DNA of 63,865 bases, the filler included, from Reticulomyxa filosa (lineage: Eukaryota > Protista > Foraminifera): the NCBI GenBank assembly GCA_000512085.1. It is 22 parts of 22 records of this genome, joined end to end, with 100 filler letters (N's around TTAATTAATTAA, not from the genome) between each part and the next. Parts side by side here need not be neighbours in the genome. Positions count along the whole stretch, not along the records: positions 32,684 to 34,472 come from ASPP01021420.1; positions 34,573 to 37,068 come from ASPP01025874.1; 20 more parts are not named here. One strand, given 5' to 3'. Shown in pieces: positions 32,684 to 34,759 of the stretch. The translations under genes were made by a program, and so were the position numbers. Under the pieces are notes generated by a model. That model ran no database searches. It had not been told where the DNA came from and saw nothing but the letters and a program-made list of their open reading frames with translations. Each line of letters opens with the position of its first letter. Position 1 is the stretch's first letter.

Positions 32684-32996
32684 ACTCTTGTTTGCTAAAC
32701 TACTAACCTGTTTCTGCATCAATTTTACGGGGCAAGGACAGTTAAGATGAAAGCAAGATCGTATGATCCAAAATACATCAAGTACTTTGCAAATCGAAAG
32801 CAAAGAAAAGATAGTAAGTTTTATCATTATCATGTGGTGTCTCAATTGAATCTCTTTGATGAGAGAAACTGGCAGCTTGCCTAAGTCCTGCTCGGTCTTT
32901 AACTAGGCTGTTGAAAGGCTTGAGCCGTGTGCGGTGAAAGCCGCCTGCACGGTTTTTAGGAGAGAGGATGGTAGTGATACCGTCCTCTTATCCGAC
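32684..32996 (+). mobile_element. Group II intron 3' end (domains V and VI) with the C-terminal remnant of the intron-encoded RT/maturase
   Basis: DV at 32922-32955: GAGCCGTGTGCGGTGAAAGCCGCCTGCACGGTTT (AGC triad, GAAA loop). DVI hairpin GAGAGGATGGTA-GTGA-TACCGTCCTCTT-A-TCC has a bulged A and the intron ends in AC at 32996. The upstream frame 32699-32884 reads VKMKARSYDPKYIKYFANR, like the IEP DNA-binding tail 'VKxxxxPYDP....YF..R'. No HNH motif. Confidence 0.9.
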
Positions 32997-33135
32997 AAAT
33001 TTTAGCCAAAAAATTTGCCTGTTCACGGCTTTGCCGTTTGTACCTTTAGTAGATAAATTTAGTAGTTATTAGCTTGCAAAATTATATTACCTCGAAAGCC
33101 ATGCGGCAATTGAGCTATTTGGAGTTTATTTTACT

Positions 33136-33475
33136 TTATACCTTATTATAAGATCTAGTCCCATAACATTCTGGATATTTAGAACAACCATAAAAATTAT
33201 GATTATCACGCCTACGCTTACGCAATATCATGTCTGCTCCACATAATGGACATTGAATATCTACCAAATTTATAGTACTTTTAGTTTTGCTAGTTTGTGA
33301 TCCACGACTACCCTTACAAACATTACAACAACGCCCATATCCTGTGATAAGTTTACTGTCATTGAAATCGTCAAGACTGCGTATTTTTTTGCATACAGGA
33401 CATTCCTTCATCTGACTTTTTCGTAATCTAGAAACATTGCTACGTATCTCATTAACTAATGAATTGCTATATTGG
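33136..33475 (-). CDS. Double Zn-ribbon module (CxxC...CxxC plus topoisomerase-type C4 zinc finger); probable frameshifted C-terminus of the helicase-nuclease
   Basis: CPVC..SKLITGYGRCCNVC and CPLCGADMILRK....FYGCSKYPEC. The frame is open upstream of ATG 33411 back to the A8 run (DQYSNSLVNEIRSNVSRLRKSQ). Confidence 0.8.
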
Positions 33476-34290
33476 TCTTTTTTTTACAAGATCAAATAAT
33501 CGGCGATTAAGCGTTTCAACTGGCTCTTTGCCAACGTTAAAGCGGTTAATACGGATAAAATTATAACCATAACTCTCTAATACTTTTTCACGATATATAT
33601 GTTGATCCGTGTAATAAAACTCATTTATAGAAGAATCGGCCTTAAAATGATATTCAAACCCATCATATTCTATTACTATTTTATGCTGCTTTTTATCTTC
33701 GTCAGTATAAATTAACAAGAAGTCACATACGTACAAAGGATGAGAATAGTGTTTATCTAATTGTTTGATTGACTCTCCTAACGGGAACTGTGCTTGCAAT
33801 TCTAATGTTGATTGATTTGTTTTAAAGAAAATAGTTGCTTGAATCCAATGTAACACTTTCCTTTCCATGGGGGATCTATCATCTGTGCTATTCGCATCTG
33901 GTAGTTTTCTTGCATTTTCAAGAGTCTTTTGATAATGCTGTAATGCTTCGCCAATAGACCCATTAAAATCATATATTGGCTTACTAAGAAAGAAATGCAT
34001 TTGCTCTTTGGCACGACTAAAACCAACATTAAGTCGTTGTAACTTAATTTGTCCACTTTCTTCTGGTTCGATAGTATTTATATTTTTAATAAAAGCCCAC
34101 CCAAGTTTATCAGATGCTGGGTTGGCAACCATTGAATAAAGAATAATATCTCGTTCCTCTCCCTGGCAAGTGTCAAAAGTCATTATCTTCAGCTTATGTT
34201 GTTTCTGAAAATGCTCATAATTAGGGTGTTTAAAAAAAATCTCTACTAAAAGCTTCTGCTGATTGGTATGTGGTGTAATGATGCCGATTG
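33467..34290 (-). CDS. Bacterial-type SF1 (Upf1/AAA_12-like) helicase C-terminus fused to a Vsr/DUF559-like PD-(D/E)xK nuclease, 5'-truncated
   Basis: Helicase motifs GIITPHTNQ, TFDTCQGEERDII and RLNVGFSRAK. Nuclease part SPMER..QFPLG..YVCDFL..IVIEYDGFEYH..REKVLESYGYNFIRI. No introns and no low-complexity tracts. Confidence 0.88.
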
Positions 34291-34759
34291 GTATGACTGG
34301 CTCAACAATCGGGATAAATAGCATTTTTATCGGTAGTAATATTTTGCTTGCTAGTGAGTTTAAATAGTTGTTAAATGACAGGTAAGTAAACCAACTTAAC
34401 ATAGGTACACCATGACAAATAGCAGAGAAAGACTTATAGAAGCTGCACAAGCTTATAGCGATAAGGCAATGGNNNNNNNNNNNNNNNNNNNNNNNNNNNN
34501 NNNNNNNNNNNNNNNNTTAATTAATTAANNNNNNNNNNNNNNNNNNNNNNNNNNNNNNNNNNNNNNNNNNNNTATTACTTTTTTGGAAATACCAAAAAAA
34601 AACAAATAACTCAAAAATAGAATTTTCTTCATGAGTTTTCTCTAGTTGTGTACTAAATCTCATATTTTATGAAATTATATTTGTAGGAACAAAAACTATA
34701 TTAAAGTATAGCTCCAAAAACTTGGCCTGCTGAGTAAAAAAGACGAAATAAGACATTAT

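Follow-up and report, generated by a model that had tools for sequence, protein, structure and literature searches.

Bacterial-type DNA in the Reticulomyxa filosa assembly and a putative slippage site in a family of helicase–nuclease genes

To which organism does a contig belong that carries bacterial-looking elements within the assembly of a foraminifer, and why is its helicase–nuclease gene divided between two reading frames? Both questions are raised by ASPP01021420.1, a record of 1789 bp in the Reticulomyxa filosa assembly GCA_000512085.1, which is complete at positions 32684–34472 of the window (the whole stretch of DNA analysed, 63,865 nucleotides joined from 22 records of this genome; positions on the contig are counted along it). 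Two dead or partial elements converge on this contig, the tail of a group II intron on the plus strand and the remnant of a gene for a helicase–nuclease with a zinc-finger tail on the minus strand. With good confidence, we read the contig as DNA of a bacterium co-sequenced with R. filosa, and a subclade of the family to which the remnant belongs as one that most likely uses slippage at runs of nine adenines (A9).

A helicase–nuclease remnant in two frames

The gene is present on the contig as its last ~380 of ~1400 codons, in two frames. A 327-codon open reading frame (ORF) at 33467–34450 on the minus strand encodes the C-terminal half of an AAA_12 domain and gives sub-threshold matches to nuclease families, and a 91-codon ORF at 33136–33411 on the same strand encodes a Top1-type zinc ribbon after a CxxC...CxxC finger. 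The AAA_12 match scores 50.7 bits against a Pfam cut-off of 27 and covers profile positions 107–188 only. Together with tblastn and alignment, it defines the segment at 33998–34303 (−) as the C-terminal half of the second RecA domain (RecA2) of a superfamily 1 (SF1) helicase, with motifs V–VI. The ribbon, of the C4 type, is matched by Zn_ribbon_Top1 (PF01396) with 44.9 bits against a cut-off of 32, in residues 52–89 of the 91-residue ORF. Linker, finger and ribbon form a tail at 33136–33477 (−), supported by the Zn_ribbon_Top1 and tblastn matches and read in frame +1 relative to the upstream ORF.

The frame change between the two ORFs falls exactly at a run of eight adenines (A8; T8 on the plus strand) at 33478–33485 (−). 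Homology in frame −3 to relatives in which all parts are fused lies directly after this run, and by tblastn these relatives align in that frame right up to it. The sequence-only reading of the contig had described a bacterial-type fusion gene. Its helicase, nuclease and zinc-ribbon parts are indeed present, but the gene is not complete.

The region between the helicase segment and the A run, at 33488–33898 (−), is a predicted nuclease domain. Matches to the MTES_1575, RAP and DUF559 nuclease families, which recur in seven of nine aligned relatives, all stay below the Pfam gathering cut-offs. An AlphaFold model of the region (pLDDT 88.6, pTM 0.83) was compared with known structures by exhaustive structural alignment, and its neighbours are mostly PD-(D/E)xK nucleases: the RAP domain of FASTKD4 (Z 8.3), I-Bth0305I (Z 7.2), Bax1 (Z 6.8), Vsr (Z 6.7) and the DUF559 protein 3hrl (Z 6.5). 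Moderate as these Z values are, they fit the Pfam hints and the residues that stay invariant in an alignment of 61 sequences, namely a D, an E-x-D-G motif and an H. Searches of the Protein Data Bank (PDB) with the nuclease domain gave nothing significant by Foldseek and nothing by sequence profile. The modelled region has the characteristics of a PD-(D/E)xK restriction-endonuclease-like fold, of the branch that includes Vsr, DUF559, MTES_1575 and RAP.

Full-length relatives are 1358–1460 residues long and contain both AAA_11 and AAA_12, and the contig aligns only to their residues ~1104–1445. The homology starts abruptly at ~34288–34300, as seen both by alignment and by tblastn. No part of the ~1100 N-terminal residues of these relatives matches anywhere on the contig, and the first RecA domain (RecA1) with its Walker A and B motifs (AAA_11), present in the full-length relatives, is absent from it. 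The remnant therefore lacks the ATP-binding half of the enzyme (RecA1 and the first half of RecA2) and cannot act as a helicase. The missing ~1100 codons are replaced, at 34304–34411, by sequence unrelated to the helicase family, with no match to the full-length relatives and none by blastn. An internal deletion was considered as the cause of the 5′ truncation and rejected, no N-terminal helicase segment being found anywhere on the contig. Just inside the start of the helicase homology there is a 14-nt direct repeat (34257–34270 and 34282–34295, 13 of 14 positions identical, 25 nt apart), which could be a chance occurrence within coding sequence or the trace of a deletion that took the 5′ part.

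Short forms of the gene that lie on long contigs are preceded by an AAA_11 ORF of 945–1079 residues, which makes one long protein the norm of the family. For three relatives (L009 2690–7029, L010 2990–7320 and L011 3073–7449), the gene calls give two ORFs side by side, one with AAA_11 and one with AAA_12 and the nuclease, so that the break falls within the helicase. These calls, which differ from the split at the A run, are probably frameshift artefacts or pseudogenes.

The A run in related genes

The frame split at first suggests a homopolymer error. However, the two closest relatives, from separate sources, have A9 at this place, again with their zinc fingers in a different frame. The run was compared at the DNA level in seven relatives from Logan, JGI, ENA and NCBI assemblies, these two and five more with short ends. 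An A9 relative lies, for example, on contig JALLOP010000030.1 of GCA_027718005.1. All seven have GTA followed by the A run (A9 in six, A10 in one), located between nuclease and tail as it is on the contig: L004 1071–1079, L005 1401–1409, L038 1220–1228, L039 1223–1231, L040 3883–3891, L041 1373–1381 and L042 2342–2351. In every one of them the 0 frame stops 6–10 codons past the run and a −1 shift is needed to reach the zinc-finger tail. The −1 frame, open from a few codons ahead of the run, continues for 113–240 codons through a conserved linker and the fingers, and its C-terminal part is a Top1 ribbon, a WYL domain (in L039) or a tail of similar kind.

The tail in the −1 frame of L039 (1223–1943) carries a WYL domain, a precomputed Pfam match, in place of the Top1 zinc ribbon, and by eye the −1 frames of L038 (1220–1885) and L040 (3883–4340) end in similar tails. 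The recoded part may be a swappable sensor or DNA-binding module.

The protein sequences divide along the same line. Among the 120 relatives listed, 20 end 3–12 residues past a VKK[K/N] motif at the position of the run, and 89 are fused in frame, none of which has KK[KN] at that site; at the DNA level, the in-frame relatives have no A run. The slip state is clustered on the tree (4 changes vs ~11 in shuffles), and its restriction to one clade is not supported. Neither a conserved hairpin downstream of the A runs nor a Shine–Dalgarno-like element upstream of them was found. At least nine A or T with a conserved out-of-frame continuation, the pattern taken to mark a slippage site, are present in seven of seven relatives and absent from the contig copy. 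The latter, with A8 and its tail in frame +1, is one A short of the relatives, and an A9 would give their arrangement exactly.

In bacterial transcription, slippage is efficient at runs of nine A or T (PMC5009743; also PMC1088944). The probable interpretation of the A9 runs is programmed recoding, in which, most likely, RNA polymerase would insert one A. In the intact relatives of the subclade, the polymerase would slip at A9 and add one A, and the resulting −1 frame change would give access to the zinc-finger tail. Cells would then make a short form, consisting of helicase and nuclease, and a long form that also has the zinc-finger, Top1-ribbon or WYL tail. In the contig copy, with its A8, even this route would be out of register. 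In the paper library searched, no report links slippage recoding to this class of helicase–nuclease genes.

The intron tail and the origin of the DNA

The other element of the contig is the genuine 3′ end of a group II intron, as the sequence-only reading had recognized from its domains V and VI. Rfam model RF00029 matches over its full length at 32920–32996 (+) with 60.5 bits against a gathering score of 40 (E 5.8e-11). Domain V is a 34-nt hairpin at 32922–32955 with an AGC triad, a GAAA loop and a 2-nt bulge, and domain VI, at 32959–32993, has a single bulged branch-point A at 32990, seven nt before the intron 3′ end at 32996. The predicted fold of 32885–32996 consists of these two hairpins, with a z-score of −5.06, and none of 200 shuffled sequences folds as well. 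The intron part as a whole (32684–32996, +) comprises the tail of domain IV with domains V and VI and is cut by the contig edge, only 236 nt upstream of domain V, leaving ~310 nt of intron.

An intact intron-encoded reverse transcriptase/maturase is absent from this part: the three frames entering from the left edge are all stopped within 21 codons, and there is no Pfam or NCBIfam match. A 45-codon ORF at 32747–32884, upstream of domain V, belongs to a possible decayed tail of an intron-encoded protein at 32726–32884 (+), with a TAA in frame further upstream at 32696–32698. This ORF and its upstream frame have one weak likeness of 19 residues (pairwise E 0.002) to the motif preceding the HNH domain in a plasmid intron protein fragment of Candidatus Paracaedimonas acanthamoebae; at the database level, nothing significant was found in Pfam, NCBIfam or a tblastn search of the plasmid collection. 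The impression that the DNA is rich in mobile elements comes from this single intron fragment.

Both elements have bacterial affinities. A word search returned 366 helicase–nuclease relatives, all of them bacterial or metagenomic, with best identities of 69%, 66% and 64%. The named ones belong to Nitrospiraceae, Geobacteraceae, Patescibacteria and Moranbacteria, and full-length relatives occur in genomes of Alphaproteobacteria, Planctomycetota and Verrucomicrobia assembled from metagenomes. Scans of genomes and metagenomes gave relatives of only 41–51% identity, none closer than 51% in metagenomes. The plasmid collection held matches to the intron at the level of domains V and VI and one helicase relative of 41% identity only. 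The phage collection gave no match, and PHROGs gave weak matches only, to families of unknown function. Two named relatives with the split frame belong to Patescibacteria, no more than a hint at the source species. A taxonomic check of the best matches, which had been suggested together with the proposal of a bacterial origin, thus gave bacterial or metagenomic sequences only. This kinship and the likeness of domains V and VI to introns of bacterial plasmids support that proposal.

Nor does the contig have any eukaryotic feature. Scans of its 1789 bp found no tandem repeats and no tRNAs, and it carries neither spliceosomal introns nor host repeats nor any other eukaryotic sequence, so the earlier description of a contig free of spliceosomal introns and microsatellites stands. 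Bacteria are present in the R. filosa reads. Castelli et al. (2024) re-assembled the original reads and recovered a Midichloriaceae symbiont of 1.31 Mb and 37.5% GC (PMC10847448). The same reads contain rRNAs resembling Vogesella, Kinneretia and a Rhodospirillales bacterium (PMC10847448), as well as rRNA genes like those of Euplotes aediculatus (PMC10847448, Supplementary Data 5, sheet Reticulomyxa). Taken together, bacterial kinship, bacteria in the R. filosa reads and the lack of eukaryotic features make a co-sequenced bacterium the best reading. The contig would come from a bacterium associated with R. filosa or living inside it.

The contig as such is ordinary, bacterial-type DNA within a fragmented protist assembly. 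A spacer (32997–33135), the 3′ exon side of the intron, separates the intron from the 3′ end of the helicase remnant that converges on it; scans of this spacer gave no ORF, RNA family or terminator. At the right edge, 34412–34472 (+) holds the first 20 codons of a gene, identified by ORF scan, which is divergent from the helicase remnant and continues past the contig edge. A Pfam search of these codons gave no match; their 20 residues may resemble the N-termini of TetR-type regulators. The right-hand 190 nt of the contig matched nothing meaningful by blastn, and scans for inverted repeats, direct repeats, promoters and terminators were unremarkable.

Several points weigh against the combined reading of a co-sequenced bacterium and a slippage-prone gene family. 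The GC content of the contig (35.2%) equals that of the R. filosa assembly (35.0%, N50 3.6 kb; PMC10245619), so that composition cannot tell host from guest, and the closest relative of the remnant is only 69% identical. The physical location of the DNA is something that we infer, and a chimeric assembly could account for the 5′ truncation. The A8 of the contig could be an under-called homopolymer. Slippage itself is argued from the comparison of sequences, and ribosomes, too, can slip by −1 on the heptamer A_AAA_AAA, which makes −1 ribosomal frameshifting an alternative level at which the shift could take place.

The DNA could instead be integrated in the nuclear genome of R. filosa, as a recent bacterial transfer that was dead on arrival and is now decaying. 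Such a transfer would account for a contig found within the host assembly at the host's GC content and for the state of both elements, the helicase gene being truncated and frame-split and the intron protein not intact; genes of prokaryotic origin do occur in R. filosa (bioRxiv 10.1101/2023.01.27.525846). Pseudogenes and intron fragments are, however, common in bacterial genomes too, above all in those of symbionts, and low-coverage bacterial bins typically contain contigs of this kind, 1.8 kb long and ending inside a repeat-type element. With bacteria demonstrably co-sequenced and nothing eukaryotic on the contig, we consider nuclear integration unlikely. Mitochondrial DNA of the foraminifer is a far less probable source still, to which we give very little credence. 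Organelles commonly carry group II introns, and there are weak Rfam matches to plastid intron models, but these are far under threshold (27 bits vs 140 and 18 vs 53), and the helicase–nuclease relatives are exclusively bacterial or metagenomic. The R. filosa assembly contained no mitochondrial genes in the study of Macher et al., who describe foraminiferal mitochondria as having only a small gene set (PMC10127745).

For the A runs, the rival to recoding is that they are hypermutable contingency tracts serving phase variation, or independent inactivating frameshifts, with the tail switched off or translated from its own start codon. Homopolymers mutate fast, and the runs here comprise 8, 9 or 10 A's; in three copies an ATG immediately precedes the first finger, and the tree does not establish a single clade for the slip state. 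Against this, the seven relatives with DNA all need the same −1 change, none being in frame, and the lack of KK[KN] among the 89 in-frame relatives means that no "on" state is observed. The long −1 frames carry the linker motif from the run onward, five of them have no ATG before the finger, and the 0 and −1 frames overlap only briefly, with the run in the middle of the shared stretch. Since an in-frame state is nowhere seen, phase variation or repeated decay is the less likely account, and we hold it to be rather improbable. We lean, somewhat more than evenly, towards programmed recoding in a subclade of Upf1-like helicase–nucleases (candidate defence genes, with named members in Patescibacteria). 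At the conserved A9, a slip of the polymerase or a −1 slip of the ribosome would set the ratio of the tail-less enzyme to a form with a zinc-finger, Top1-ribbon or WYL tail for sensing or DNA binding, and the Reticulomyxa contig would hold a decayed copy.

ASPP01021420.1 should accordingly be flagged as bacterial-type; without linkage data it is no evidence for foraminiferal genes or for transfer into the host. The public R. filosa assembly may hold many more non-host contigs. The contig is a scrap, yet it led to an observation at the level of a family, a fixed out-of-frame A9 between a nuclease and a zinc-finger or WYL tail, and this conserved candidate slippage site is the part worth following up. 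If it is true recoding, it would be a case outside insertion sequence (IS) elements and dnaX in which the attachment of a domain is under slippage control. Annotation would then be affected, since gene calling regularly splits such genes into two ORFs or marks them as "partial".

Comparison with known systems

The intron tail resembles bacterial group II introns with En(HNH)-type proteins, to which its domains V and VI are 77–79% identical over ~85–100 nt. These ltrA introns occur in plasmids of Serratia, Yersinia, Escherichia coli and Enterobacter and in the plasmid of Candidatus Paracaedimonas acanthamoebae. The layout is the same, with the frame of the intron protein ending just before domain V. 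In contrast to the plasmid introns, the contig has the last ~310 nt only, without an intact reverse-transcriptase/maturase or HNH domain, and upstream of domain V the plasmid collection showed no DNA-level likeness to other introns.

The helicase family profile matches Upf1/NAM7 structures (E 4e-5). The remnant shares RecA2 motifs V–VI with the SF1B helicases Upf1, NAM7 and IGHMBP2, and the full-length relatives match TIGR00376. Unlike those helicases, the relatives come from bacteria and have a nuclease and zinc fingers at the C-terminus, and the contig lacks RecA1 and the first half of RecA2. With the Vsr, DUF559, MTES_1575 and RAP nucleases, the remnant has in common the D ... E-x-D-G ... 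H pattern and structural neighbours at Z 6.5–8.3; it differs in its Pfam scores, which remain below the gathering cut-offs, and is a predicted nuclease.

Among anti-phage defence systems, the full-length relatives are nearest to the PADLOC candidate PDC-S37 (9e-41), followed by the helicase cores of Mokosh MkoA/MkoC and Hhe. The NCBIfam scores are 142 bits for ProA (cut-off 1500) and 108 for Hhe (cut-off 2000). No full-length match to Hhe, ProA, Mokosh or PDC-S37 reaches the family cut-off, the PADLOC matches covering the helicase core and part of the nuclease. The relatives share with all four the Upf1-like AAA_11/AAA_12 core, and with PDC-S37 also part of the nuclease region; they differ from them in their N-terminal regions and in their tails (zinc-finger, Top1-ribbon or WYL), and the contig copy is a fragment. 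We regard the gene as a candidate defence-type helicase–nuclease, outside any named system. Relatives often adjoin transposase genes of the rve, IS21 IstB and Mu types (L004 1588–2511; L009 7101–9375 and 12297–13029; L040 599–1669), which fits a mobile or defence-island context.

The putative recoding site has its closest parallels in programmed transcriptional slippage at A9 or T9 runs, as in dnaX of Thermus thermophilus and in IS elements, and in the rescue of genes with poly(A) tracts in Buchnera and Blochmannia (PMC5009743; PMC1088944); in the family described here, the A9 likewise lies inside coding sequence. It would differ from the dnaX and IS cases in that the gene family is a helicase–nuclease and the slipped product is the longer one; the run on the contig is A8, and the site is known here from DNA. 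As in those cases, no stimulatory RNA structure is evident, and the alternative frame of the relatives encodes a conserved C-terminal part.

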